Shown here: one piece after another, positions 3,934-62,220 of the stretch
How the letters are laid out: each line of letters starts with the position of its first letter
Numbering within the stretch: position 1 is the first letter of the stretch
Assembly: GCA_964035545.1 (NCBI GenBank)
Contig: OZ037766.1
Span: forward strand, 30,010,640 to 30,074,639
DNA: 64,000 nucleotides
Direction: 5' to 3'
Source: Bugula neritina
Lineage: Eukaryota; Animalia; Bryozoa
Notes under the pieces: model-generated
What the model saw: the letters and a program-made list of their open reading frames with translations, nothing else
What the model was told of the DNA's origin: nothing
The model's database searches: none
Translations under genes and position numbers: made by a program

Positions 3934-5027
3934 ATGAGGAAGAGCATAGCCTGTGGTCTACTATTGGCAGCAGTTTTTGCTGTCTCTGTTGATCTGAGTG
4001 ATGCAACTTGTGGACGTAAGTAAAATATGGACTTATCAAATCCTAATTTCAGAGTTGAAAATATTAATTAAATGCTTATCATCAATTACTATATTATAGT
4101 ATATACAAAGTATTAGCTAATATTTATGCATATAAGCTAACTTTAATGAGTTTCTAAGCGTTTGAGCAATAAATTGTCGTATTAAAACAAATGATAGTTT
4201 TTAAGTCCAATAAAAACATTTGTTTGAGTTTGAAAAGTTAATGAGACAGTAGAACTGTATTAAAAACTAAACATTTGTAATCTACAAAAAATTTCTTTCA
4301 TATTTAATAAAAAAATTATCCCTATCCTAAATGACATGATATTTAATGTTTAAAAAGTTTAGTTTAATCCCGAGTATTTTTTCAGATGGAGTAAACTGCC
4401 CCAGTGGGTATCTCCACAATCCACATTCTAGCACCTGCTACAAAATTGTTACATTGTCAAAGAACTGGGATAATGCCAAAGCCTACTGTGAAGGAAATGG
4501 AGACAGACTTGCTGTGTTTGACAGTACTGACTCTATTTCTTGGGCTAAACACATGAGAAAAACTCACTCAGGTAAATTACTATAATATAACTTTCAAAAT
4601 ATATTATGATAAAACGTTTGCTTTTTTGAGTGCACATTTATATTGAAATATAGCTCCCCTATCATAGTTCGAGCAAAAATGGTTTATATTATTGCAATGA
4701 AATAAAAGTAATACTCCGATATTTTTGTTTAAGAAAAAAAGATCATTGGCTAGAGCTAATATAGAAAATATTTTTACCCTATTTTATGCAGCATGGAAAG
4801 GGCATATCAACAAATACATTTGGATTGGCGGAAGAAACTATCATGGTGTCTGGCAATGGGATGGGAAACTCAAGAAAGACATAGTTGTAGAGGACTGGTA
4901 CCCCCAACGCCCCAACAATTTAGGAGGTCCTCAAGACTGTCTCGGTCTATTTGCTGATAGTAATGACCTCAAGTGGGATGATGGAACCTGCACTTCTGCG
5001 GAATATTTTATGTGTGAAAAATATTAA
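3934..5027 (+). CDS. Secreted single-domain C-type lectin A, copy 1 (167 aa; exons 3934-4015, 4386-4571, 4792-5027)
   Basis: Signal peptide MRKSIACGLLLAAVFAVSVDLSDA; two phase-1 GT-AG introns; long-form CTLD with CP..CY, W..A..YC, WIGG, RPNN, DC, WDD..C, FMCE; AATAAA at 5144. Confidence 0.95.
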
Positions 5028-5378: not shown

Positions 5379-5600
5379 GGGAGCAGCCATGGTCTAGGGG
5401 TTAGAGCGTTTGCCTAGTAAACATGAAGTCATGGGTTCGAGCCCTGACAAAGGCCATTGGTAATGTTAGGAAAAGCACATAGTCATAATTGTTCCCGTGC
5501 CTCATTTAAATAAGTCCTTAGCTCCTTTTAACAAAAACCCTTTCTATCACAGATTTCTCACAGGGATAGCAACGATAAACTTGCGTGAGTTGTTTTTGTT
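5379..5600 (+). mobile_element. tRNA-derived SINE, copy 1
   Basis: Pol III A box TGGTCTAGGGG at 5390-5400 and B box GGTTCGAGCCC at 5434-5444. Head, body and tail are homologous to the dispersed copy at 60899-61272. Confidence 0.85.
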
Positions 5601-5640
5601 GAATCATTTTAAGAATTTATATTATAAGAATTATATATAC

Positions 5641-8023: not shown

Positions 8024-9109
8024 TTAATATTTTTCACACATAAAATAATGCGCAGCAGTGCAGGTTCCATCATCCCATTGAAGATTCTGATTGTTAGCAA
8101 ATAGACCGAGACAGTCTTGAGGGCCTCCCGCATTGTTGGGACGTTGAGGGTACCAATCCTCTACAACTATGTCTTTCTCGAGTTTCCCATCCCATTGCCA
8201 GACCCCTTGATAGTTTCTTCCGCCAATCCAGATGTATTTGTTGATATGCCCTTTCCATGCTGCATATAAGATAAGATAAAATATAGATGTATTTCACTAG
8301 CAGCTTTGTGCAATCCTAAATGCAAGACTATAATATTATTGTTATTTTGCTGATGTTATTTGCCATAATCTAGACTAAAGCTCGTTTCAAGAAGCATAAT
8401 ATATATAACTATTCCAATATGATTGTGCACTCAAATCCACAATATATCTTTAAAAATTATGAGAATTCACCTGAGTGAGTTTTCCTCATATGTTTAGCCC
8501 AGGATATAGAGTCAGTACTATCAAACACAGCCAGTCTGTCTCCATTTCCTTCACAGTAGGCTTTGGCATCATTCCATTTCTTTGACAACGTAACAATTTT
8601 GTAGCAGGTGCTAGAATGTGGATTGTAGATATAGCCACTGGGGCAGTTTACTCTATCTGAAAAAAATATATATTTAGAATGAGCCAAAAATTTTAAACTC
8701 AAAATATCAAGTCATGTAAGATACAAGTATTATCTTTTATGTGTGACAACATTTTGTGTCAATTATAACAAGCGTTTGATGATTTTTGCAATAGTCAAAA
8801 ACCATTAATAATTAATACAACTATTGCTTTTTTAATTTTCCACATTTCTGCTAATCCGTTCATTAAAATTGTAAAAAAATAATTAGTTCTAATACGTTTA
8901 TTTATTTCAAGAGCAATGCAAGAACTTATTAAATTTGGTAAATTCTCAACAGTTTAGTTTTACATCTATTAACATTTTATTTGCAATTCTAAACTTGAAC
9001 CCTATATAAGAACTTTGCTTTACTTACGTCCACATGTTGCATCACTCAGATCAAAACAGACAGCAATAATTGCTGCCAATAGTAGACCACAGGCTATGCT
9101 CTTCTTCAT
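8024..9109 (-). CDS. Secreted C-type lectin B, copy 1 (167 aa; exons 9109-9028, 8656-8471, 8259-8024)
   Basis: Same 82/186/236-nt exon structure as lectin A with GT-AG introns. Exon 3 reads AWKGHINKYIWIGGRNYQGVWQWDGKLEKDIVVEDWYPQRPNNAGGPQDCLGLFANNQNLQWDDGTCTAAHYFMCEKY. Confidence 0.94.
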
Positions 9110-14373: not shown

Positions 14374-14595
14374 GGGAGCAGCCATGGTCTAGGGGTTAGA
14401 GCGTTTGCCTAGTAAACATGAAGTCATGGGTTCGAGCCCTGACAAAGGCCATTGGTAATGTTAGGAAAAGCACATAGTCATAATTGTTCCCGTGCCTCAT
14501 TTAAATAAGTCCTTAGCTCCTTTTAACAAAAACCCTTTCTATCACAGATTTCTCACAGGGATAGCAACGATAAACTTGCGTGAGTTGTTTTTGTT
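14374..14595 (+). mobile_element. tRNA-derived SINE, copy 2
   Basis: Repeat-unit copy of 5379-5600. Confidence 0.85.
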
Positions 14596-14635
14596 GAATC
14601 ATTTTAAGAATTTATATTATAAGAATTATATATAC

Positions 14636-23358: not shown

Positions 23359-23580
23359 GGGAGCAGCCATGGTCTAGGGGTTAGAGCGTTTGCCTAGTAA
23401 ACATGAAGTCATGGGTTCGAGCCCTGACAAAGGCCATTGGTAATGTTAGGAAAAGCACATAGTCATAATTGTTCCCGTGCCTCATTTAAATAAGTCCTTA
23501 GCTCCTTTTAACAAAAACCCTTTCTATCACAGATTTCTCACAGGGATAGCAACGATAAACTTGCGTGAGTTGTTTTTGTT
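23359..23580 (+). mobile_element. tRNA-derived SINE, copy 3
   Basis: Repeat-unit copy of 5379-5600. Confidence 0.85.
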
Positions 23581-23620
23581 GAATCATTTTAAGAATTTAT
23601 ATTATAAGAATTATATATAC

Positions 23621-28609: not shown

Positions 28610-29858
28610 TTAATATTTTTCACACATAAAATACTGAGCAGATGAGCAAGTTCCATCATCCCATTTAAGGTCTTTGTTGTCAGAAAATAGCCCGAGACAG
28701 TCTTGAGGGCCTCCTGCATTGTTGGGGCGTTGAGGGTACCAATCCTCTACAACTATGTCTTTCTTGAGTTTTCCATCCCATTGCCAGACACCATCATAGT
28801 CTCTTCCACCAATCCAAATGTATTTGTTGATATGTGCTTTCCATACTGCATCAAATAATAAGCAATTATAAGATCATATATACACACATATACTAAATAA
28901 AACAAATTAACAAGCATCAGCCAAATGTAAATATTTTTAATTCACAACCTGACAATTGAATTTCATTTATTAAAAGCAATCTAAAATAAAACTTGACTAT
29001 TGAAAATCAATTTTTTTGCATGTTTTGAAATGTTACTGATATATATGCATTTATTGCACACTTTTATGTCAAAACTGTTAATTTGAAACTTTTAGATAAA
29101 ACTTATAACGGTTAGTACATTTTTTCATAGTTACCTGAGTGAGTTTTTCTCATATGCTTAGCCCAGGATATAGACTCAAGGCTGTCAAACACAGCCAGTC
29201 TGTCTCTATTTCCTTCACAGTAGGCTTTGGCATCGTCCCATTTCTTTGACAACGTAACAAGTTTATAGCAGGTGCTAGAATGTGGATTGTAGAGATAACC
29301 ACTGGGACAGTTTACTCCATCTAAAACAATTAGTTGACTTATTTATTTTTTTTATGTTTAGAGCATCATTTCACCAAAGAAAATAATTTTTAAGCTTCAA
29401 AGTATTCTATAATGTATTTCTTACATAATATAATATTATATATAATAACTTGTATATTTTGTATTTATGTTCAACATTCTGAAAAACAATTATAATTTTA
29501 TAATTTGGCGAAAATTTCCCCAAAATAAAACAGCTTGTTTAATTTCACCAACTGAGTTATAATAGCATTGTAGATTTTCATTTACTTTATTTTTTTAAAT
29601 GTATGTAATTAATCTTGAAATTACAGTTTTCTTGTCATGAAAAAATATAACAGCAATTTGAACCATGCATAATCTGCACTAAAATATATAGGATAGATTT
29701 GTAGCTATATATAGTTGTAATCTAAGTTCTTATTCTTTCAATTTTAGACATAGATATTGATAGCTTTATAACTTACGTCCACAGACTGCATCACTCGCAT
29801 CAAAACAGACAGCAATAATTGCTGCCAATAGTAGACCACAGGCTATGCTCTTCCTCAT
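28610..29858 (-). CDS. Secreted C-type lectin D (167 aa; exons 29858-29777, 29320-29135, 28845-28610)
   Basis: Same 82/186/236 structure. Exon 3 reads VWKAHINKYIWIGGRDYDGVWQWDGKLKKDIVVEDWYPQRPNNAGGPQDCLGLFSDNKDLKWDDGTCSSAQYFMCEKY. TATA and CCAAT lie upstream at ~29937-29987. Not shown in the ORF track. Confidence 0.93.
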
Positions 29859-39223: not shown

Positions 39224-42200
39224 TCAGTTGCTTTTAATGCACACAACACAAGGTACAGCTTTCTGCTCTACCCAGAGTCCTCTACCAGATCTAACCAGCT
39301 TCACTTCTGGAGCTGCAGGATCTGTACCGTATCCTTCTGTTACTTCAGGGTTTATATCCATACATATTGATTGTGATGTCCCATGTTCTGATTCAGCTGC
39401 CATCAAGTATCCGTGATAGGCCCTGAACCACTCTCTGCCAGCGTTACAAGTGTTCCAGCCAATCACAGTAATCTATAATACAGTAAAATAAACGGTCAAT
39501 TGTCATAATGTCTCCAAATATTATTGCTTATTTCAAGAGGTCAACATAGTTTTATTCTAAATACATTTTTATAATTTGGTTCCTCGGTAAGTTTGAAAGA
39601 AATCTAGAAAATTCTACTACTGTGATATTATAAACCATTACAAATAGATAATGGAAACCAACATGATAAAACACAATAATGATGCATTATATTATGAAAC
39701 CTTTACTTTTATAAAAATATTTTAGGATAAAAAGCCTACATCTAATAAAATTGAAGTATCTATTATCATTAATTTTCTAAATTTGTTATTCCATCCTAGA
39801 GACTAACGATTGAGAGTTATAACTCTGCTCATACCATTTCAGCTTGAGGAACCTGACACAGAGCACATCTAATGACCTTGTTGTGGTAGACATCAATCAG
39901 AGGTTGAACACCAGTTCCACTCAGATTAAACCTGGCAGCTACTAGTTCTGGTCCAGATTCTAGTGTAACTCCTTCTGGTTTTATCTGATTAGGAAGAGGT
40001 GCGCACTGAAGTGTTCGGGATCCACTATTTGCAAGTCCAACTACATACCCTAAAGAGAAGAAATGAAGAGCATGTATACTATTGATCTGCAGTCTGAATA
40101 AATGTGGTTAGTTTTGGCAGACACATTGCTGGAATCTGAGAGCATATTCTAGTATTATTATATAATGGTAGTGAAGGAGGCAAAAGTTCTTTAAACAGTG
40201 ACTAAAGGAACTTTTAAATACACCAATAAAAGCTGTAGCCAAAATAACATACGGAAAAAAGTTGACTATTAGCTGCAGCTACTATACCTACAATGTGATG
40301 ATTCAACTTCATATAAAACATTTCCTTTATGTTTCAAATTTTAAAATCAAATATGTAATATGTTTATAATCATTTTTCAGCATGGGAAATAACATAGATA
40401 TGTGTCTGTGGCATTCAGGGCTTTCAAAACACCCACAATTAATTGCATTCTATTTAGCACTACATTGATAAAATAACACTTTAGAATACACTTTTTTTCA
40501 CATATAATTATATAGTTGATAATATTTTATATAATTATCATTCAATCTGATATGAAATGTGATAAGAGTAGTTTGCAAAAAACTATGTGAAGATTTTCTT
40601 CTGTTCTTATATAATCAGTAACAGAGAATAAATTCTTCCAAATTTTACTAATAAACAAAAAAGCCCCAAAACATTTTGCATTTACAACTAGAAACTCACC
40701 ATCATAAAACTTTTGTCCAAAAGTGCACCCAAATTTTCCATATCGAACAAAAGTGACCTCAACTGTAAAAAAGGCAAGAAATCATAAATTGTATACTCTT
40801 TTAGAACATTATCTTTAGTTTTAGACAATGAAGCTGATGAGCTAAAATTGTTCCTCGACCAATTTAAAGTTCTATAACAGGACTGTGAGTTCAAATAACG
40901 GATTGCTAAAATAATTTATGCCAATATATTATAATGTTTTATTATAGTTTTATAAGTAATAATTATAACTTATAATACTATTAGTTACTGATGGATTTAC
41001 AAACCCACAAACTCAGGTGTACCTTGAACTCCATCTTGACCTCGATCACCAGGAGCTCCATCAAAACCAGGAGAGCCATCTCTACCAAGTTTACCGGGTT
41101 CACCACGAGCTCCAGGTTCACCACGAGCTCCAGGTTCACCACGAGCTCCATCTCTACCAGGTTCATCACGAGCTCCATCTCTACCAGGTGCACTAGGAGC
41201 TCTATCTCTACCAGCTGTACCAGGAGCTCCATCTTGACCATCAAAACTATCTGCACCATATCTACTTAGTGTAATAAAATCTCTATCTTGACCAGTTGTA
41301 ACAAGAGCTCTAGGGTGACCAGGAACCTCAGCTGTGCTATCCCTACCAGGTGCGCCCGGAACTCTAGATTGACCTGGAGAACCATCTCTACCAGGTGCAC
41401 CAGGAGCTCCATCTTGACCTGGAGAACCATCTCTACCAGGTGCACCAGTAGCTCCATCTTGACCTGGAGAACCATCTCTACCAGGTGCACCAGGAGCTCC
41501 ATCTTGACCTCGATTACCAGGAGCTTTATCTTCGCTAGATGTGCTTGAAGCTCTATTATTCTGTGTTGATTGACTTGTTTGAGTGGTTAATTGTGGATTT
41601 TGAGAATCTTGAATTTTTATTCTCAAGTCTTCAGGTGACAGAGAGAGAACACTCAGTGTAGCCAGTGCTAATGGGTAGGTCACTGTAGCAGCTGGAGAGT
41701 CTACTCTTGATGGAATAACTACAACAGACCTTTTACAAAGTTATCTTATTTAACGCTGGAGCGAGATTTTTGACAATCTGATTGGTAAATTGAAGCAGCT
41801 GCATAAAAATACAGAACCATTATTTCACTCATTTTTAAAACAACTATATAGAAGTAATTTCTATTGCGATCACCCGTACTGGACTACGACCGTATAGGTG
41901 TGAAGGGTGTGAAAAAAATAAATTTTATTCTATAGCTAGATAGCTTTAAAAACCTAATGTTTTTAATTATTATACGTAGTATTAAGTGTTATATAGTTAA
42001 AATTAGGAAAGTTAAATTATGTACATACAATCTTATGTACAGTTTGCTAGTCAAAACAAAAACACCATTTTAAAAAGTTTCTATTCATAAAATCAAATTG
42101 ATAGTTTGCTTCAACATCTACTATTAAATAGGCAACTTGCTGATTACTTTATTTTCTATACCTAAAATCTTAGCACCAAATCCTCTAGCCGTGATTGAAG

Positions 42201-43611
42201 AATCTGTCCTAAAAGAGATATAAATTGGTCCATTAAATTCTATTAAATTTCGAGTTTCATTTATTCCACAAAGCCTTTGTCTTGTAAGTAGGGGACCTGT
42301 AGAGCTACCTCCCCTAACCTGAAAAGAAATTGTTGAATTTTTTTATAAAGCTGTTAAAGCTTTTATTTAAATTTTAGTGATCACAATCAAATTGCTTACT
42401 AATATTAAATTGTTTGCAGCTCAAGTTTGGTACCTACACCTGACAATTTGAGAAGCAATGATTTTACATGTAAATGAAAATTTGTACAAACAATTTTTTA
42501 CTATACACACCAGAACTTTTTATATCACTATTACTTCATTTTTTACAGTTTGTGGTTTCCTAATGCAATTATTGTTTTCATAAAAACATTCTAAAAATTA
42601 TACATATATAATTTCCAATGCAAGAAAAAAAAACGTCAAAAGAAAATTAAACTAAGTTAGTAGCTCCTTTGAAACATAGTATATTAGTAAAAAAACCCAA
42701 AAAACATTTTTATACACTGAATTTTATGTTAGATAACAGGAATTTTTTGAATTTTGTATTTTTAGTCTAAATACAGTTACAATTAAAATTTTCCAAGAGT
42801 AATAGAGTGTTGCAATACCTCAATGTAATCATATACACAATTGTTGGTTTTCTCTACAAAGATTGGTTCTTCAAACACAAGTCTCAGTGACTTCTCATCT
42901 AACAAAGCACTTCCTTTATAGGCCTCCGGCACTGGGAATCTTAATACAAAATTCCATTCACAGAAGAGATTGTTGGAGTAGTTTCCAGGGTAGTTTGGAG
43001 ACTGAAATCTGTAGCTTTCCAAGGAGTCTATTGGTACGTATATAGTACCCCCACACTTCACGGCTGTAACTTTACATGCAAAAAATCTATTGTACACTTC
43101 ACTGAAGACTATATATATATATCTGATTATTTTATTTTTCAATTAGCACTTTGGTGTAATTTTTGAAAATATAATTAATTTTAAAATGTTAATGATAAAT
43201 TCAGTGAAAAGTATTACTGAGAATGATAATCAGCTATTCGTTTCAACAAGCAAACCATTACTTGCAGCAATAGCTAATATATATTACATTTATACTTACA
43301 TTATGTATATGAATTGAAGCTATAATTATTTTGTCATTTCTATCTTAAAATATTATTGCTTTAAAACCACATTGCGTTGGTATTTTTTCTATCAATGTGG
43401 TGGTTTCCCTGAAAATAGAGGGTCCTGCATGGTGCATATGCTTAAATGTATTTTACTATAGATTTGTTAAACTAATTTACATAACATATTGACATTGCAT
43501 AATGATTTATAGATTCAATGTTTTATGAGCCTCACTATTAAACAGTTATACGATCATTCAAAAGTATCAAAGGGATACATTTGCAATTAGTTTTACTATA
43601 CCTAAACATAA

Positions 43612-43707
<96 letters not shown>

Positions 43708-45853
43708 ATTCAAAACATATGATAAAGGTTGCAAAATGGCCTTTTTGTTGGTGCACATAAACTTGTAAATAATAGCTTTGAAAAATAAATTAATATAAAG
43801 ATAGAGATCATAGCTCGATGTCTAAAGCAACTATCATCTATATGATATATTGCTTGAAGGTGGACTGCATGGTCAACACTGAAATAAGAGTAGTATAAGA
43901 AAGCTTTACTGACCTTGTCTTTTTACTCGTGCACTATCTTTTCCTGGAAACCCAAGGTTTCTCTGATTGCTCTGAAAATATACAAGTTGAAAGAAATGAC
44001 CATCTGCTCAAGCAAAGGCAGTAGCCTCAAACAATAAACATGTTCAATCTAATTTTACCTGCTTGAGCAGTAGTGCTCTTATAAACAACATGAAATAAAA
44101 TTGTGCTGTATTTTATATTGTGAAAGTCATGGCTAAAAATTCAACATTTTTGTATCAATTGAGAAACTTCTCGGTAAAATAAACATACTATAGCGCTATT
44201 GCACAACTTTTCAATGCATTATTCAAAGTTAAGTAATTCATTTGACAATTTTCTTTGATTTTCACTGATTCTCAATATATAATCTTTAACAACTCTTGTT
44301 ACTTATAATCAGTCAACTAAGAGTTCTATTTAAACAAAGATTCTAAGCTGCAAACAGCTTTTTACAAATAAAGCTTATTTTATAGCTTCCTTTGACTTGG
44401 GTAAGTAATTATCCATATTTTTGCAGCTGAAGCTGAATTATAATTTAGTGAAACTCAATGGTAGATTTCACACAGTTTTATTTATATGGACAAGTTGCCA
44501 TTTCTAAAGGTGTTACAGTTAATGATAGTAATATTATGAATGTAGTAATTGATGGAGCTAAAATTTCACATAGGTTGCTATGACTACCTATAGCTATATA
44601 ATTCACATGAGTTGAAAGGTTATTATAGTTACTGCAAGCACTAAATGTTATAGATGACAAACCTAATCTTCTGTCAGTTGCCAATGAATAATTACTTCGT
44701 CTACACCTCAAGGAAAGAGATTTCAGCCTGACTAGGATGTGGTGCTACTTCGTACCAAGCTGAGTAAGTCACCAAATTATTGTTGTGTAGTACGTTAAGT
44801 TAAGCTCCAATGAGGTGTTCTGATTTTCTATTTTAGTAGTAGAAATTATAGTCGTAATGAAATATGTTTGTTGTACATACGTAAATTTGCCAGTTGGCAA
44901 GAGTTCATATAGTATAGAATATAGACATATTATGCACATGTAATGTGCTTGTCCACACTATTTCCTATATGCATGTGTGATTTTGCTGTAGAAACTAACC
45001 GGCCTGCATGTATATGAGCCAGATTTTGTTACACCTGCATGAAAGGCCTCTACTCTAAACAATTTCCATGCAATTTCGAAATATTTTAGGTTTTATTCTA
45101 AGACTACCTTTGCAATATACAAGTTTAAAAAAATCATTCTTCAAGTGCCAATTACTACCACGGGTATATTTAGCATATTATATATACGGTAAAAGGATAA
45201 TCTAATATAGAATATATTATATTTATCTATGTAGCAGATATAGCACAATATGTCTTTCATTTAAACATTATTTGTTTAACAATTAATTAGTGTATATTTA
45301 TGTTGACTAGTATATATCAGTTTTCAGATGAAGTAATTTTAATCTCAAGCAGAGTTATAGTTTTACTGCTAACTCTGTCGCAGGATGACTTTTGAAAAAC
45401 ATAAATAGGCTTTTATTAAAAGTTTGCAAAAGCTAAGTAATGTATTTGCTGGGTTTAAATAGCAGTGTACACATATTATAGCTATAACAAATTATTAGGT
45501 GTCACTAATTGTTTGTTGAGCTTTAATTCAATGATTTTTAGTTTGACCTTCTTAAACTATATTTCTTTGATCCATTAAATTCTGCTCTATAGTGACTGAA
45601 CATGCAAAATTGAAATAACAGAACAACTTAAATCAATACTTACTCTGTTTACTATATTTGATTGGGTAACACTTTCCTTAGATAAGCTCTCGTGTTGAGG
45701 TGGCTGAGAAATATAGTTTGGTTGTCTGTAGAAAGTTTCAAAGAATGTAAATCCACATAAAATGAGTGTGAAAAGATGTAGACAGAAAAATACTGTTGAA
45801 AATACTTTCATCTTGTATTTTATTACAATGAGCTCTTCCTCTTGCAGTCCCAT
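39224..45853 (-). CDS. Paralogue X1: type II membrane protein, TM - RVKR furin site - CUB - interrupted collagen - short-chain collagen C4-like C-terminal domain, ~630 aa (exons 45853-45644, 43971-43914, 43063-42819, 42318-42162, 41718-41023, 40762-40700, 40049-39835, 39472-39224)
   Basis: All eight exons join in frame with GT-AG sites; the collagen-exon donor GTACAC is weak but shared with X3. CUB motifs: [34 protein letters not shown]. Gly-X-Y run present. C-terminal motifs: TFVRYG..C..YDGY, CALC, YHGYLM, ICMD..PE, CVVC. Confidence 0.85.
43615..43704. repeat. (TA)n microsatellite in intron 2 of X1
   Basis: Pure AT run; absent from the homologous X3 intron. Confidence 0.97.
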
Positions 45854-46687
45854 GATGCTTTGATTTGTAATATTTCACTTTGCAAGATAATTGAGCACTA
45901 TTACAGTACAGACTGCATTATTATGAGTTATTATTGAGGTTAGTTTTATTAATACTGCCAGCTTATATAGCACGGTTTCGAAGTTAAGAAAAGATCATCT
46001 TTATTGGATAAAAAAAGCATGATATTATCTCCATGGTGACATAGTTCAAAATCAATTTTCTATAATTATTCTATAATCTTATGAGTAACTCAGCTAAGCC
46101 AATTTCACAATATTAGTTTCTCAAAGATTTTCCAGTGGTCTATAATAAAATATAAGTATGATTATGTTATTATGTTAGTTCACAAAAAAAACTTCGAAGA
46201 TTTTATTATTACTTTTTGCATTGAAAAGGCAACTTTATGTCTGGCTATTGGAATTGAATTATAATGAGTATAAAAAAATGTATGTGGTTATAGCTTGGTA
46301 CTCTACACTCATCTTTCAATCTAAGGCTTTACCATAATCTGATGAAAATATTCATGTTTTCTTTCAAACTTTTCATACAGCATCACATTACACCACAGCT
46401 TTTATTATATTATATTACATTGCATTAGACTACCCTGTATTATATTATCCTGTGTTTTATTATTTATAATATACTATTTACAGTATAACACTACAGTATA
46501 GTAGGTCGTATTCTATGTTTTATTGCACTATTATACGAGTCACTTTTGTATTCAAATACATTGTATATTATACACTATACATTCTATTTCATAACTTTGT
46601 ATTTACAAGTACTATTTTTAAGATATTTTGCTACGTCATATAATATTTGGGTTCAATATTTAGTTATGAAGTTGTTTGAATTTGTAT

Positions 46688-46943
46688 ATATGCTCACACA
46701 TATATGCTCACAAAATGCTCTCATATGTTTATAATTTACTCTTATGCCCTCATTATTCATGCTCTTAGGTCTATTATTTAGTGTCATGTACTAAAAGTAT
46801 ATAATATATTTATAGTACATGACACCAAATAATTTGCCTAAAGCATGAATTATAACGAGGGTACGAGAGCAAATTATAGACCAATGAGAGCGTTTTGTGA
46901 GCATATGAGAGAATAATGGCTAAACACTTTATTGTGAGCATAT
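46688..46943. mobile_element. Fold-back / MITE-like imperfect inverted repeat upstream of X1
   Basis: The arm 46702-46793 (atatgctcacaaaatgctctcat...gtgtcatgtacta) is largely the reverse complement of 46813-46906. An outer atatgctcac/gtgagcatat pair is also present. Not seen in the homologous X3 upstream region. Confidence 0.65.
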
Positions 46944-48450
46944 GAGACGTAATAAGTAAATTTTTGACCCTTTGGCACTCTATAGCCGTGCGTGTTGCAG
47001 GGTCATTATATAGCAAAAATAAAATATAATTTTCTCATTTACAATTAGCTCTTTGAGATCGGCTTGTAAGTTCTTTGCCCCTAAGTGATACAGCTTGCGT
47101 TGATTTAAATTGTTGACTCCTAAGACTATATAGACATATTTTCAGCAGCAAACTTATATTGATGGACCATACAATATGCCTACCATATCCTAAAGCCTAG
47201 ATTAGATAAACAAGTCTAATAATTATATTTGAAATGTTATCACATATAAGACACAAATTAATATGGATTATGGAGTATATGCGTAAGTACTTCTGATCTA
47301 CATTTATCTTATTTCCTGGTCTGTCGTCACTGAATAGTGTTCAAATTGAAACTAGGAAGTGCCAATAAATCATAGTACGAGGATACAAATTGTTAATGTG
47401 TCTTCTAGGCAAGAAATGATTTTAAATTTGCCAATCAACATGCAGTTAACTAAAATTTTTTACAACATAATCGATTCCATCAGTGAACTACCGATGTTTT
47501 TTTGCTATATACGTAGCAACAAGTATAAACTTGCAGAAACTGAGAAAAAATTTAAGTTAGTGTGCTTATAATAATAGATTAACCAACCTACTTTGAGAGA
47601 GTGTGAACAAATGTTGATTTTGTAAAGTAACTGCCCATTGAAAATTGAGCAGCAAACCTCCAACTAGGAAGCTAGCATTTAACAATTAGGCTTTAGGGGC
47701 TACTGCATGAGTAATCACTACACCACATTTCACTGCCCCCCACTATTCTAGCTTGTCAGTTTTTGGGCTCCACCAGCCCATCAACACCTTAGGAGCAGTA
47801 GCACCCAACAACACCCGCGCAGGGCTGAAATAGCTTGTACTTAGAATATTTCTTTAGGGGTTTATAATGGACTTTTTTCCACAAACACTAAACACTGACT
47901 GGTTATTTGCTGAATGCTTATATATAGCCAATTACTTTATAAATGATAATATAATTAAACTTTTCTTGTGAATTCAAAAAGTTACATCAAAGAACAGCAG
48001 AAATTTTGATTTGATCATATTGCAGTTTCAAAACTAGTTACAGACAAATTACATGGTTTTCGTGGTATGGCTGTGGTGATGTATTTGTTATATGGTTCAT
48101 TGGTGACTATGTTTATTGGAAAGTATGGTACTCAGCTTCCAACGTTTTTATTTTTAATATAAAAGCTGCTGTGTCATAAGTTTTACACCAGCTATTACAT
48201 CAAATCTAAAAAAAATAATTTTGAAAATATTTTGATTTAATTGCATATTGCCAAATTAATCAATGAGTTTAAAATCAATAAGGCTATACCGAAATATTAT
48301 CATGGGTTGCTATCACTGCAACAAATATTTTATTTATTGTGTTGGCAAAAAATATTATGAATCAATGATAAAGAATTGAGATACTTTAAACAAAAGGCCA
48401 TAAGTACAGATGAAGAAAATTATAATGATCAGAGTTATATTTGTTTTGAA

Positions 48451-55020
<6,570 letters not shown>

Positions 55021-55538
55021 ATTTCTATTGCAGTAATCTTTCACGTAGTGTGTCGAGATATAATCTTACACTTATTATTAAGACTCTCAATTTCCATTAT
55101 TTAAGTTGAAGTTACCATAGTTACAAGCTTATCTTTAATAAGTAATTTTATCCAATATTATTATTCATATATTTACTGCATATTTTTATAGATGTGTCTT
55201 TCCTAAATGAAACTCACCTTTGCAAACACATTTTTGGTAACTAGAAAAATGGTAAAATCATTTTCTAGCTTTGAGTTGCAGTTTAAATAAATTAGATCAA
55301 AATCATCAAACTTTAGCATAGCAATTGTGAAATTTTAGACAGTTTATTTAGTAGAAAAATATGTAAATGAGCAAGTAACACAATTTCATAAAGGATTGCA
55401 AAAGAAGAATACCATAAATACAATCACCTATTATTATACAATATGCTTTTATTTTTCATACATTATCAAAACTTGTACAAAACACACACTTGAGCAAACT
55501 TCAGTTCATGCATGGCCATATGATTATTTGTGCAAAGT

Positions 55539-58500
55539 TTAATTGTTTTTAATGCACACAACACAAGGTACAGCTTTCTGCTCTACCCAAAGTCCTCTAC
55601 CAGATCTAACCAGTTTCACTTCTGGAGCTGCAGGATCTGTACCGTATCCTTCTGTTACTTCAGGGTTTATATCCATACATATTGGTTGTGATGTCCCATG
55701 TTCTGATTCAGCTGCCATTAAGTATCCGTGATAGGCTCTGAACCACTCTCTGCCAGCGTTACAAGTGTTCCAACCAATCAAGGTAATCTATACACAATAA
55801 AATTATTAGTCAAATGTCTTCTTAAATCAAAATATTGCTGATTGGTTGAAGTGGTCAACATGATTTTATTCTAGATACATTGCTACGTATTATGTGATCA
55901 CTTTGATTTCTTTTTTAAGCTAATACTTTTCTTTGAAAACTTCAACCCCTATTAAAAGCTGTTACAAACTACTGCAATGCTAATTAAAGAAATAATGTAC
56001 TATGGTGGCGATATTGTAAAACGTTTACCCTAGTAAAAATAATTTTAAATTAAAAGCCTATTTATATCTATTCCAATTTATATTGTTTAGTACAAAATTT
56101 TCCAAGTTTCGAATCTGTTCTGAAACTAGCTCATTTTTAATATATCTGCAGTATATAAAATTACGTATTGCGATTTCAATTTCTTTACAATATTGAAAGC
56201 TGCATTTCTACTTACTATTTCAGCTTGGGAAACATGACACAAGGCACATCTGATAACCTTGTTGTGGTAGACATCAATCAGAGGTTGAACACCAGTTTCA
56301 CTCAGATTAAACCTGGCAGCCACTAGTTCTGGTCCAGATTCTAGTGTAACTCCTTCCGGGTTGATCTGATTAGGAAGAGGTGAGCACTGCAGTGTTTGGG
56401 ATCCACTATTTGCAAGTCCAACTACATACCCTAAAGAGAAGAAAGGAAGAGCATGTATACTATTGATCTGCAGTCCAAATAAATGGGGTTAATTCTGGCG
56501 CCTACATTGCTGGAATCTGAGAGCATATTCTAGTATAGAATAGTAGTGAAGGGACCAAAGAATTTGTTGTACAGTGACTAAAAAACTTCTAAACACAAAA
56601 TAAAAGCTTTTTGGCTGAAAAATATGAGAAAGTTGACAACTGGGCCCAGCTACTACCAACTCATATGTTTATTCAACTTTATACAAAATATGTTTTGTAT
56701 TGCAAACTTTAAAATCTTTCATGGTAAGTTGTTAATTCATTTTTAGCATGTAAAATGACATAGATGTGCATACAACTTACAGTATGTATTTTCAAATAGC
56801 AAATAATAACTTTAATTCCATTCTGTTTATAGCACTTGATGAATGAGACAATAAGATATTAATGAAATATGTATAATATTCAGTAGAGAACAGTATATAT
56901 ATAATTATTATCCAATCTGATTTTATTTTCATAAGATTTGCTTGCAAAATAATTATGTGAATATTCTGACTTATTTGTATAGTCACGAGCACAAAGAAAT
57001 TGTTCTAAATTTTACTAATAAGGAAAACTGCCCAAAATGTTTTGTATTGACAATTACAGACTCACCATCATGAAACTTTCGCGTAGAAGGACAACTAAAA
57101 CTTCCGTATCGTATAAAAGTGACCTCAGCTGTAAAAAAATGAAGAAAATTAATTTTGTGCCTTTTTAGGATATTATGCTCTATATAGCTTTAGACCCTAG
57201 AGCCAAAGAATAAAAATTGCACTTGTATTAATCTGGGCCCTTAACTAACATTGCTAAAACAATTTATGCAGTTGTACAATAATTCTTTATATTGTTGAAA
57301 GTAATAGTTATACAATGTCTTAATGTCTCTATAGCTACTGATTGGTTTACTATTTCTTGATAACCAGGTGTACCTTGAACTCCAGTTTGCCCAAAAGAAC
57401 TAGCTATGCCATCTCTACCTGGTTGACCAAGAGCTCCATTTTGACCTGGAGAACCAGTTATGCCATCTCTACCTGGTTGACCAGGAGCTCCATTTTGACC
57501 TGGAGAACCAGCTATGCCATCTCTACCTGGTTGACCAGGAGCTCCATTTTGACCTGGAAAACCAGCTATGCCATCTCTACCTGGTTGACCAGGAGCTCCA
57601 TTTTGACCTGGAGAACCAGTTATGCCATCTCTACCTGGTTGACCAGGAGCTCCATTTTGACCTGGAGAACCAGTTATGCCATCTCTACCCAATGTGCCTG
57701 GAATTCCAGCTTGACCAGGTAATCCAGCTGTGCCATCTCTACCTGGCTGACCAGGAGCTCCAGGTTGACCTAGGGAGCCAATTCTACCAAATGTGCCAGG
57801 AACTCCAGAGTGACCCAGATAATTAGGTGCACCATCTCTACCAGGTGTGCTTAAAGCTCTGTTATTCTGTGCTGATTGACTTGTTTGAGTTGTTAATTGC
57901 GCATTTTGAGCATCTTGAATTTTTATTCTCAAGTCTTCAGGTGATAGAGAGAGAATACTGAGTGTAGCAAGTGCTAATGGGTAGGGCACTGTAGCAGCTG
58001 GAGAGTCAACTCTTGATGGAATAACTAAAACAGACCAAACCTGATTATCCTAGTTAATGCTGAAACGTGATTTCTGACAATTTGATTAGCAAATTTAAAA
58101 CAGATACATAAAAGGTAATCACAACTTGTTTTTTGGAACAATTAAAAGTGATGTGTATTTTTTAACTAATCAAAATAGTATAAAATATTATAGAGCTAAA
58201 ATTAGAAAAGTAGTTAAGTACATACAATTTTATGTACACTTTATTATGCAAGATGATCAAAATCTTAAAAATTCCTAGTCAACATCTAATGTACTAATAA
58301 CCGTGTTTTCTATATACCTGAAATCTCAGCTCTAAATCCTTTAGCCGTGATTGAAGAATCAGTCTTAAAAGAGATATACATTGGTCCATTAAATGCTATT
58401 GTAGTCTGAGTTTCATTCATCCCACAAATCCTTTGTCTTGTAAGTAGTTGACCTGTAGAGCTACCTCCCCTAACCTGAAAAAATGAGATGTTGAATTCAT

Positions 58501-61500
58501 TTGATTAGAACTTTATTTATTAGTTTTTTAAAACTATAGTGAAGTCGAATTGCTCAGTAAATTTGTACGCTCAAGTTTGGCAACTACAATTATTAATTTG
58601 AAAAGTAGTAATTTGAAATAAAAATTTAATATGAACATTTTTGATTACACAGATATTTTTCATACTATTATTATCTATATTTTTTACAGTGATTTGCACA
58701 ATTTATATTACACATATATAAACATTCTAAATTATACATAATATTATATATGTGACTCACAATGCATGAAGAAGATATGTTGTCAAAAGTGTTTTAAATT
58801 TAGGTAATATATATAGCGCACTTGACTATAAGTAGCATTTATGTTATCAATATATTTCTTTATACACCGGTCTCATGTTGAATATGGCAGAAAATTTTTA
58901 AATTTTATACTATTATTCTATGCAGTAATAATAAAAAAATTCCCAAGAGTAATAGAGTGTTGCAATACCTCAATGTAATCATATACACAGTTGTTGGTCT
59001 TCTCTACAAAGATTGGTTCCTCAAAAGCAAGTCTCAGTGACTTCTCATCTAACAAAGCACTTCCTTTATAGGCCTCCGGCACTGGGAATCTTAATACAAA
59101 ATTCCATTCACAAAAGAGATTGTTGGAGTAGTTTCCAGGGTAGTTTGGAGACTGAAATCTGTAGCTTTCCAAGGAGTCTATTGGTACGTATACAGTACCC
59201 CCACACTTCTCGGCTGAAACTTTACATGTGCAAAAAATCTATTGTACACTTTTCTGGAGAATATAATATATTATATAGTTAGCTATTTCAATTTTCAAGA
59301 GGTCTACTGTTATTTTGAACATATACAAACAGTTTACAATGTCAATAATACTATGCTTTTAAAATAATTTTTACACACAGTGATAACTAATATTATGTTT
59401 ATCTTTATTATTTATATAAATTTGCTGTTTTCTGTGATTAGAATTTTAGTTTACTGTACTATAAAAATATGATGCTTGTATTTTTCTTTTTCAATGCGGT
59501 CAATTTATGCATGCTTTTGTATTACGCCATCAAAATGTTACACTAACTTACAAAAGTTGATATGATATATTAATTAGATAAAATCTTTCATATACTTACC
59601 ACAAATGATTGCTAATTATTATGCAACAGCTTTAAAGTCATATTCATTTGTAATTAGTTTATGACACTAACAACACAATAGATATGTTATTCAAATCATG
59701 CTAGAAAGGGTGCAATGTGAGCAGTTTGCCATTACACATAGTGTAAACATCTAGGAAAACAGTCAAAATAAGGAGCTTCGTGTAAAAATAAAGACAGTGG
59801 TGTCTAAAGCAGCTTCTATGATGCATTAGTTATAGAGGTGGGCTGGTCCAAAGTAAAATAGGAGTATATTCAACAAACAATGCCTTACAAACCTTGTCTT
59901 TTTACTCTTGTGGTATCCTTTCCTTGAAATTCAAAGTTTTTTTGTTTGATCTATAAAACATACAAATAAACAGTAGATAACACAGAAAAACCAATACATT
60001 TTTAGGCAAAGACAATAAGACAATAAATAATGTGTATAATCTTTATCCTTAGTATAGATAGCTTTAGCAATCCTGAATGGTTAGTAGGATTCCTATAACT
60101 TGAAAGTAAATTATACTGCATTTCACACTTTGAAAGTAAAGGCGCTAAATATATAGCTACTGCAGAGTTTTGAAACCGATATAGAAAGTTTTGCAGCACA
60201 CTGAAGATATCTATATATAGCACAAAATCTTGTGCATAGAATGTAAGGAACTAAAGAAGTGTCAGTATCCGAATGGCAAAAGAGGCTAGGCAAACTTATT
60301 TATAGTTATGTTATATACTGTTGACATCCTTTAACCATTTTTTATTGCATAATATTCTTTTAATGATCACTAAATTATTCTGGCTGTACATTTGCAAACA
60401 GTGAGATTCGTAGGCTTGTTAATAAGATACAAGTAGCTTTTTATAAACAATGCTTTTTTAGTTGACTTTGATCTCTGTACCTTATAATGCATGTTTTTGC
60501 AACTGGTTGCATTATATTTTAATGAAAATCAATGATGAAATTCAGGTAGTTTAACTCAATTAGTTATACAGACAAGTTGCCATCTGTAAAGTCTCTACTC
60601 ATTCCAACGTTATGCAGAGGAGTAATAGGGATGATTTGACGGGTATTGGTTGCCATGACTACTTAGCTATATAGCTTGCATGAGTTTGAAAGCTACAAGC
60701 ACTTGTTATAGATGACAAAATTAATCTTCTGTCAGTTGCCAATGAATAATTACTTAGTCTACACCTCAATGAAAGAGATTGCAACCTGACTAGGATGTGG
60801 TGCTACTTCGTATCAAGCTGAGTAAGTCACCAAACTATTGTTGTGTAGTACGTTAATTTAAGCTCCAATGAGGTGTGCTGTTTTCTATTTTAGTAATAGA
60901 AAAAAAGCTCAGACAAGTTTATTATAGTCACTAGCCCTGTGAAAGCCCCTGATAGAAGGGGTTTTTGTAGTGTTAAGTTTACCCAGTGGTTCCCGTGGTG
61001 TAATGGTTAGCACCATTGAACTATAACCCCTTATAGTTTCAGTTCAGTCGTTAGCACACTTGCAAGCCGAAGGTCTCGAGTTCAAAAGTGGGGGCAAAAT
61101 TATTTTACAGTTTTCTGTTAAATCGGGCTAAGAACTTATTCAGATGTGGCACAGGAGCAATTATGATTGGATGCTCTTCCTATAACAACGCGAATGGCCT
61201 TTGCGGGTTTGAACCCATGACTCGGTAGTTTACTAAGCCAATGCTCTAACCCCTAAGCCACGGCTGCTCCCCTATATAATAGTAGAAACTAGAAACTATA
61301 TTATTATAATAATTTTTGTCATACGTAAGTCTGTTTACCAGTTGACAATAGTTGCTATAGCATAGACATGCATACATGTATGTAATGCACCTGCAGGCAG
61401 CAGCATTTCCATTGTTTTACATGCATTCACACTATATAGAATATGACCAGCATGTATAGCCAGTTCCTGTTACCTTATGAAGGTTACTCCATTTTTTCAC

Positions 61501-62220
61501 AAAATTCAGTATTTGATTATGTGATTATATGTGCATATACGTTAAAAACCTGTTTTGATGAATCTTACAAATCACAAATTACATTTTGACTGATACATTG
61601 TATGTACATATATTAACATATACAATAAGCAAATATAACCTGAAAGACATATGGCACTATAATATCTATATTATTGCCATTATGTTTTGCAAACTAATTG
61701 GTAAATAGTAAATCTGTCATTCACAAAAACGCAATCGTGTTTTAAGCAAACTTGTAATTTTGATACGAGCTCTGTTGCAAGTGCGAGAGTTGACAAACGT
61801 AAATATAGTAGTTTAAAAAAAACTACTCAAAATCTAAAGAAGATATTTCATGGGTTAAATCACGTGCAATTAAGGTGGCCGCAACAAATTTTTAAGCTGT
61901 CAGTAATTGTTTGTTGAAGTTTTGCTTTTTTTATCTAACTTTCTTTCGTTCTGTGCGGTATGGTGACTGAACAAGATTGAAATAATAGAACTAGTTAACT
62001 TCATACTCACTGTGTCGTCTATATTTGATTGGCTAGCGCTTTCTTTAGATGAGCTCTCATGTTTAGAAGGCTGAGTAATACAGCTAGGTTGTCCGTAGAA
62101 AGTTTCAAAGAATATAAATCCACATAAAATGAGTGTGAAAAGATGCAGACAGAAAAATACTGTTGAAAATACTTTTATCTTGTACTTTATTACAATGAGC
62201 TCGTCCTCTTGCAGTCCCAT
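55539..62220 (-). CDS. Paralogue X3: TM - RVKR furin site - CUB - collagen (46 uninterrupted Gly-X-Y) - C4-like domain, ~615 aa (exons 62220-62011, 59950-59893, 59213-58969, 58474-58318, 58024-57374, 57128-57066, 56430-56216, 55787-55539)
   Basis: Exon sizes 210/58/245/157/651/63/215/249 mirror X1; all junctions are GT-AG and in frame. Confidence 0.87.
60899..61272 (-). mobile_element. tRNA-derived SINE (longer form) inserted in intron 1 of X3
   Basis: Minus strand reads GGGGAGCAGCCGTGGCTTAGGGGTTAGAGC...GGGTTCAAACCC (A/B boxes) and is homologous to 5379-5600. The homologous X1 site (~44840) is empty. It is flanked by an imperfect direct repeat tagtaatagaaa / taatagtagaaa. Confidence 0.87.
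60988..61095 (+). pseudogene. Degenerate tRNA-like sequence nested antisense inside the SINE
   Basis: GGTTCCCGTGGTGTAATGGTTAGCAC is a tRNA 5' half with an intact D-arm/A box, and GAGTTCAAA at 61078 is B-box-like. The T-stem and acceptor stem do not pair. Confidence 0.6.

Follow-up and report, generated by a model that had tools for sequence, protein, structure and literature searches.

We analysed a 64,000-nucleotide stretch of Bugula neritina DNA (contig OZ037766.1, G000:C2:30010640-30074639), here called the window, from an AT-rich genome of 216 Mb with about 30% GC. Toward its end, the window contains a cluster of three predicted eight-exon genes on the minus strand, X3 (55539-62220), X2 (48451-55020), and X1 (39224-45853), which appear to be three real tandem genes. 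Their predicted products share one layout, comprising an N-terminal tail, one hydrophobic anchor, a mini-exon ending in (R/K)VKR, a CUB domain split over two exons, a stalk exon, and a three-exon head resembling the NC1 domain of collagen IV. The combination of CUB, collagen, and NC1-like head is a novel one inside a known family, that of the spongin-like short-chain collagens. Exon borders were set from paralogue conservation, open frames, and splice signals, and were then checked purely by coordinates. Database and fold searches used single exons, whereas the joined models were handled with local scripts that covered frames, motif counts, the ratio of nonsynonymous to synonymous substitution (dN/dS), and a comparison with 121 relatives. 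The features of the cluster are as follows.

55539-62220, minus strand: gene X3, eight exons, 615 amino acids (aa), all splice sites AG/GT; orthologous exons kept in two Bugula contigs, L010 and L016
62011-62220, minus strand: X3 exon 1, a 16-aa N-tail and a hydrophobic anchor of about 24 aa; its ATG is the first after an in-frame stop
59893-59950, minus strand: X3 mini-exon, 58 nt, phase 0 to 1, ending RVKR-Q; RVKR conserved in L016
58969-59213, minus strand: X3 CUB exon a (Pfam PF00431, E 6.8e-8; best solved match a cubilin CUB)
58318-58474, minus strand: X3 CUB exon b, with exon a a phase 1-1 module
57374-58024, minus strand: X3 stalk exon, phase 1-1, a neck of about 60 aa and then 52 in-register triplets (Pfam Collagen, E 7e-26)
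57066-57128, minus strand: X3 NC1-like exon 1, 63 nt; the exon 6/exon 7 junction is also found in B. neritina protein P0165
56216-56430, minus strand: X3 NC1-like exon 2, first half-domain (family hidden Markov model, E 0.004, positions 31-91)
55539-55787, minus strand: X3 NC1-like exon 3, second half-domain and stop (family model positions 98-176)
48451-55020, minus strand: gene X2, eight exons, 593 aa with an upstream acceptor; same skeleton, non-collagen stalk
52992-53046, minus strand: X2 mini-exon, ending KVKR-E
52291-52535 and 51233-51389, minus strand: X2 CUB exons, separated by an intron that contains a (CA)401 microsatellite
50209-50739, minus strand: X2 stalk exon, 177 codons, without Gly-X-Y; all of 20,000 shuffles contained stops
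49604-49669 (GC donor), 48979-49193, and 48451-48759, minus strand: X2 NC1-like exons
48451-48702, minus strand: alternative X2 last exon, if a non-canonical TG acceptor is used
45644-45853, 43914-43971, 42819-43063, and 42162-42318, minus strand: gene X1, exons 1-4; 630 aa, all splice sites AG/GT
41023-41718 (stalk), 40700-40762, 39835-40049, and 39224-39472, minus strand: gene X1, exons 5-8

The three genes share one set of intron phases (0,1,0,1,1,1,0), which makes the two-exon CUB one symmetric phase 1-1 module and the stalk exon another. A preliminary description of the locus had proposed three same-strand paralogues on a single exon and phase skeleton, and these models bear it out. Exon lengths in X3 are 210, 58, 245, 157, 651 (stalk), 63, 215, and 249 nt, and in X1 they are 210, 58, 245, 157, 696 (stalk), 63, 215, and 249 nt; every splice site in both genes is AG/GT. 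The X2 exons measure 204, 55, 245, 157, 531 (stalk), 66, 215, and 309 nt, with a single GC donor after exon 6, and there is no AG at the position where X1 and X3 splice into the last exon. We considered that X2 might have no usable last acceptor and rejected this, since the nearest in-frame AG lies 57 nt upstream and gives the 593-aa product.

Two other features inside the introns deserve mention. A 500-bp block in intron 1 (60423-60902 in X3 and 44344-44845 in X1) mimics an exon; we rejected it as one because it has stops in all frames and is a dispersed non-coding repeat common to B. neritina contigs (L010, L013). Intron 3 of X2 contains the perfect (CA)401 microsatellite (51469-52270), which causes a strong GC-skew dip at 50-54 kb.

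The CUB assignment is clear from exon a by itself, which scores 33.2 bits with the Pfam profile against a cut-off of 21.4, and exon b matches profile positions 71-109. The X3 CUB contains four cysteines (Cys 93, 124, 165, and 188), and the nearest solved CUB structures are those of cubilin. In X1 and X3, the segments SPNYP, FVE, YDY, and TDSS form what we take to be the Tyr...Glu...Asp...Asp-x-Ser pattern of Ca2+-binding CUBs. Such CUBs grip basic residues on their partners. The four cysteines and this pattern are shared with the Ca2+-binding CUBs of C1r/C1s/MASPs, cubilin, and PCPE, but X2 has Val where X1 and X3 have Ser, and none of the X proteins has the protease or EGF partner domains. 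Reading the pattern in this way makes Ca2+ binding by the X CUBs a putative property. Within the genome, an X-type CUB occurs only in X1-X3, in one further paralogue (Z, below), and in one fragment. CUBs are absent from all 121 representative relatives from other organisms, 11 of which have collagen. By analogy only, a membrane CUB protein is functionally paired with a short-chain collagen in MFRP and C1QTNF5, where the type II CUB protein and the collagen come from one bicistronic transcript (PMC3217991, PMC4214712). Those are two polypeptides with a C1q head, whereas the X genes place CUB and collagen in one chain with an NC1-like head.

The stalk exon is where the three genes part company. 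In X3, it matches Pfam Collagen (PF01391) with 90 bits, and among its 52 in-register triplets exactly 46 form an unbroken Gly-X-Y run (aa 294-431), many of them with Pro in the Y position; the DNA is built from a 54-nt repeat in seven copies (57396-57771). A search of this exon against 5.8 billion proteins returned only generic collagens and a B. neritina fragment. The X1 stalk has 55 in-register triplets, of which 36 fall in three perfect runs (17+4+15), and it is made of tandem units of 45, 27, and 18 nt. Glycine has been lost from 12 of the 55, clustering mid-helix, with no frameshift or indel among the losses, so that the register is kept. The X2 stalk is instead an open frame of 177 codons without any Gly-X-Y run, in which Ser, Asn, Pro, Thr, and Glu are abundant, and not one of 20,000 shuffles of the exon was free of stops. 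Its first dozen or so residues are similar to those of the X1 and X3 stalks; the DNA is otherwise only 47-49% identical, and no relatives were found among database proteins of 97-310 aa. The earlier account of these stalks stands for the 46 perfect triplets of X3 and for the Ser/Thr/Asn-rich non-collagen stalk of X2, while its term half-eroded somewhat overstates the loss of 12 in 55 in X1. Its broader point, the same skeleton with a different stalk, agrees with the common exon and phase plan and the three unlike stalk exons.

The identity of the head was less immediate, as Pfam returned nothing on the two larger head exons at E<=1, C4 (PF01413) included. An exon-8 profile made from seven paralogues led to 282 representative proteins, whose consensus (YxRWG..C, LCLP, PCAVC, CPxGWxxEYxGYLM, ICVD, CVVC) is that of the spongin-like family. 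When a profile of 20 database members only was run against the window, it matched exon 8 at E 1e-14 to 2e-14 (positions 98-176) and exon 7 at E 4e-3 (positions 31-91), the two halves thus lying in the right order. Against PDB sequences, the family profile reached collagen IV (Viking) at E 1.1 only, so a fold comparison was needed. We modelled one family member, not itself an X protein, with a predicted local distance difference test (pLDDT) score of 90; its first 41 PDB matches were all collagen IV NC1, the best at E 7.7e-6 (Foldseek). The nearest language-model neighbours of X3 exon 8 were likewise clusters with Pfam PF01413 C4. The proposal that the head is short-chain collagen C4-like is thus supported by the profile match, the fold of a family member, and the language-model neighbours.

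The X heads are a derived subtype, shared with the paralogues Y and Z described below; they read VRSGRGLW at the place of the family's CGxLPCPPY pair, which is absent. Spongin short-chain collagens (reportedly treated by Exposito in 1991 and Aouacheria in 2006) have a short Gly-X-Y helix followed by a two-lobed NC1-like domain, as do X3 and X1, in which a short collagen stands directly N-terminal to the head; X2 has no such collagen. The X genes differ from them in adding a dibasic mini-exon and a CUB, in having a putative signal anchor in place of the signal peptide of typical members, in lacking the CGxLPC pair in the head, and, in X2, in lacking any collagen. Collagen IV NC1 (PF01413) is alike in its fold and duplicated half-domains, with CxxC ending each half, but the X proteins have no long interrupted helix or 7S domain and their heads have fewer cysteines. 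By definition, a spongin-like collagen consists of a short helix and an NC1 (Fidler 2017, PMC5395295; family also PMC12549020). Members occur in invertebrates outside Ecdysozoa and are regarded as ancient relatives of the basement-membrane collagen IV. In matrix collagens, NC1 serves chain selection and network formation (PMC5395295).

The NC1-like domain also turns up in other settings. Database proteins combine it with a CshA repeat, Big_9, FlgE D1, or bacterial TSP3 (P0042, P0011, and others), and it occurs in a MACPF protein of the protist Ancoracysta twista. Either the domain is not confined to animals or those records are contaminants or transfers.

At the other end of the chain, each X protein has a single hydrophobic segment at about aa 17-40, with a Kyte-Doolittle 19-residue mean of 2.2-2.6. 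In X3, the hydropathy maximum is 2.38, the preceding 16-residue tail is Lys-rich, and the start is the same ATG used by the B. neritina annotation. The hydrophobic core and the Lys-rich tail suggest a signal anchor more than a cleaved signal peptide; anchor-type relatives also occur among database proteins (P0060, P0049). The motif RVKR (X1, X3) or KVKR (X2) occurs once per protein at aa 82-88, at the end of the mini-exon, as the only dibasic furin-type motif, and is followed by Q in X1 and X3 and by E in X2. Ectodysplasin-A and gliomedin/colmedins also comprise an anchor, a furin site, a short collagen, and a globular C-terminal head; they lack a CUB, however, and carry a TNF or olfactomedin domain as the head. 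Among type II membrane collagens, for which juxtamembrane furin shedding is established (PMC4678570), the MACIT collagens XIII/XXIII/XXV and Caenorhabditis elegans COL-99 resemble the X proteins, as predicted here, in type II orientation, juxtamembrane furin-type site, and shed trimeric collagenous ectodomain (PMC4678570). MACITs, however, contain several helices with interruptions and a conserved motif of 34 residues at the C-terminus, and they lack both a CUB and an NC1-like head. Of these traits, the X proteins have the anchor and the RVKR motif, and the multi-helix layout is absent; the likeness is one of layout, and we claim no homology. By analogy, the X genes may work like shed type II membrane collagens at the membrane end, and we do not place them among that group.

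Orthologous sequences allowed us to examine whether each X locus is a single gene. The protein encoded by exon 8 is 95-97% identical to a Bugula neritina hypothetical protein, and the alignment of the X3 locus to the draft contig VXIV02001150.1 (L010, GCA_010799875.2) runs the full length of the locus, introns as well as exons, at about 80%. A Bugula-derived metagenome contig (L016, JGI 3300002729, Illumina-based) contains exons 1-4 and 6-8 at identical lengths, keeps every intron splice dinucleotide and RVKR, and gives a dN/dS of 0.21; outside the repeat array of the stalk, it is clean. L010, which comes from a PacBio/Canu assembly (PMC7576161), has six 1-nt deletions in coding exons of the X3 orthologue, and we regard these as assembly errors because they are absent from the independent contig L016. 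A further B. neritina contig, L013, which encodes a second exon-8-like protein, was rejected as context since it has no match to the window and starts at the gene.

The public annotation of the orthologous locus splits it into three separate products of 154, 119, and 117 aa, a split that follows from the single-base deletions in L010. Fragments in the same annotation retain several of the modelled junctions. P0278 joins exon 1 to the mini-exon and then runs into CUB exon a. In P0165, the collagen exon is spliced to NC1 exon 1 at the exon-6 acceptor, though the donor used within the collagen exon is another one; the junction between NC1 exons 1 and 2 is exactly as modelled.

Sequence divergence is distributed unevenly over the cluster. 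In nucleotides, exons 7 and 8 of X2 match their counterparts in X1 and X3 at 92-98% identity, and exon 7 shows no synonymous difference between X2 and X3, whereas the remaining X2 exons are 47-67% identical and its introns do not align. Near-identical exons amid such diverged ones point to short gene-conversion tracts, limited to the only segments where homology persists. Between X1 and X3, dN/dS is 0.39, and in CUB exon a the nonsynonymous difference (pN) is 0.015 against a synonymous difference (pS) of 0.10.

To place the X genes in their family, we surveyed the genome for NC1-like exons and found at least 152 matches, mostly in large tandem clusters, which we estimate to represent roughly 70 genes. 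A typical member (L014) combines a signal peptide with a coiled coil, about 45 Gly-X-Y triplets in one exon, and a canonical head. Paralogues Y1-Y3 and Z and example arrays are listed here.

G000:C2:30074640-30094639 (L008+L011), plus strand: paralogues Y1-Y3, each built from one anchor exon, one short collagen exon, and three NC1-like exons
G000:C2:30467000-30476999 (L012), minus strand: paralogue Z, with an anchor-like exon, two two-exon CUBs, and three NC1-like exons, at the level of open reading frames
C2:28.75-29.08 Mb, C1:2.19-2.25 Mb, C1:29.59-29.65 Mb, and C5:14.74-14.77 Mb: examples of NC1 arrays

Y1-Y3, which follow directly after the window, contain no CUB and no dibasic mini-exon. 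Z, a distant paralogue, lies about 0.4 Mb from the X cluster, and no stalk exon is visible in it at the level of open reading frames. The layout of Y1-Y3 is probably the ancestral layout of the X genes. The ancestor would have had an anchor, a short collagen, and an NC1-like head, as in these CUB-less neighbours, and would have gained the phase 1-1 CUB module and the dibasic mini-exon by exon shuffling. The stalks would then have evolved fast, through tandem-repeat copy number in X3, glycine loss in X1, and a swap to a non-collagen linker in X2.

These features suggest a sequence of steps for the proteins. The chain would enter the endoplasmic reticulum as a type II signal-anchor protein, and three chains would join through the NC1-like head, and in X3 the 46 Gly-X-Y triplets would zip up to form a rod about 40 nm long. 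A furin-type convertase would next cut after (R/K)VKR and yield a soluble molecule with its three CUB modules and its NC1-like knob at opposite ends. The released molecule could serve as a cross-linker in matrix, cuticle, or adhesion. Furin release is predicted from the motif and trimer formation from the 46 triplets.

The explanation that we favour, and hold with moderate confidence, is that X1-X3 are real genes in tandem that encode shed cross-linkers and represent a lineage-specific branch of the spongin-like short-chain collagen (NC1-like) family. Several observations weigh against it. The joined gene models are predictions from sequence, and no full-length protein with an X head is present in the protein collections searched. 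Both L010 and L016 break frame inside the stalk repeat array. The X heads have 4+4 cysteines, eight in all, against about 10 in typical members, and the upstream acceptor of X2 adds 19 mostly hydrophobic residues between the halves of the head. The glycines of X1 have been replaced by point substitution, 11 of the 12 by a single base. Membrane orientation, cleavage, trimers, and Ca2+ binding by the CUB are all read from motifs. X1 and X2 may, moreover, be decaying copies, because X2 lacks the normal last acceptor and X1 has its 12 glycine losses. Taken to its end, this would make X3 the only working collagen, with X1 and X2 decaying or non-functional and their heads kept by gene conversion from X3, as the near-identity of X2 exons 7 and 8 and the absence of synonymous differences in exon 7 would allow; X2 also lacks a helix, uses a GC donor, and carries the weaker site KVKR. 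We consider such decay unlikely, as the three frames are open over 574-630 codons in AT-rich DNA, the X2 stalk stayed open where none of its shuffles did, X1 and X3 show the constraint described above, most visibly in CUB exon a, and the glycine losses of X1 are in register and free of indels. It is similarly doubtful that the proteins are not shed at all and instead act as cell-surface collagenous receptors like class A scavenger receptors, or that a cleaved signal peptide is followed by (R/K)VKR as a propeptide site. The cleavage site is a motif only, and X2 has Lys at P4; yet the motif sits in its own conserved mini-exon in X1-X3 and the orthologue, is absent from the CUB-less neighbours Y1-Y3, and follows a hydrophobic core of about 22-24 residues that, coming after three lysines, suits a signal anchor better than a signal peptide.

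Two other readings strike us as much less probable. The CUB exons and the collagen/NC1 exons could belong to separate genes, an upstream anchor plus CUB and a downstream short-chain collagen, in line with the three products of the public annotation and with joins modelled from genomic DNA. That split coincides, however, with the six deletions of the draft that are missing from L016, and nothing evident at the locus gives a downstream collagen/NC1 gene its own start or signal peptide: the stalk exon starts in phase 1 without an ATG or signal peptide, and CUB exon b ends in phase 1 with no stop. Since the phases also agree across X1, X2, and X3, and paralogue Z too links CUB exons to NC1 exons, we judge separate genes very improbable. 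The preliminary description proposed a defence-collagen-like or adhesive family; in the former case, the proteins would be soluble defence collagens that recognise patterns like collectins, ficolins, and C1q. A stalk with a globular head fits that layout, a triplicated C-type lectin gene unit adjoins the cluster, and in the lectin pathway Ca2+-type CUBs dock on such collagen stalks. Nevertheless, Pfam identifies neither a C1q domain nor a lectin or fibrinogen-like one in the two larger head exons, and a position next to lectin genes does not speak for a common function. The head is NC1-like, a kind of domain that in matrix collagens selects chains and builds networks (PMC5395295). We see no specific support for the defence reading and give it little credence.

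A bolder version of the shed cross-linker explanation, which we offer as a long shot, is that the three chains co-assemble. Gene conversion would keep the NC1-like chain-selection heads almost identical, and these near-identical heads would let chains mix or compete although their stalks are unlike, the helix of 46 triplets being rigid, that of X1 kinked, and the non-collagen linker flexible. Once shed, the Ca2+-type CUB triplets would clamp basic residues on the stalks of the roughly 70 other spongin-like collagens. MASP-collectin docking is analogous, though here the docking would serve building material. If true, this would be a self-contained system in which a CUB grips a collagen stalk to cross-link bryozoan cuticle or adhesive matrix.

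The remainder of the window adds some observations of its own. Within positions 1-27000, a 9.0-kb unit occurs three times in tandem at about 100% identity, with a diverged partial copy near 29745, and each unit contains C-type-lectin-like exons on both strands (e.g. 4346-5027 plus, 8457-8702 minus). This array beside the X cluster is either a very recent triplication or an assembly duplication. Further dispersed non-coding repeats, likewise shared with B. neritina contigs, lie at 5382-5613, 14377-14608, 23362-23593, and 61112-61268.

No protein with a CUB N-terminal to a collagen and a C4-like head had been recognised in the preliminary description, and this remains so, as the combination of CUB, collagen, and NC1-like head is neither described in the literature searched nor present among the 121 database representatives. 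At the X3 orthologue, our models correct a fragmented public Bugula neritina annotation. Little is known of the role of spongin-like collagens outside sponges, and this locus indicates that membrane-anchored members of the family are possible. It suggests, furthermore, that the spongin-like family can gain a ligand-binding CUB by clean phase 1-1 exon shuffling and that, under a constant head, a collagen stalk can grow longer, erode, or give way to something else. The cluster thereby constitutes a compact natural experiment in the tuning of collagen stalk length and rigidity, and its products are candidate matrix, cuticle, or adhesion proteins in a fouling bryozoan.

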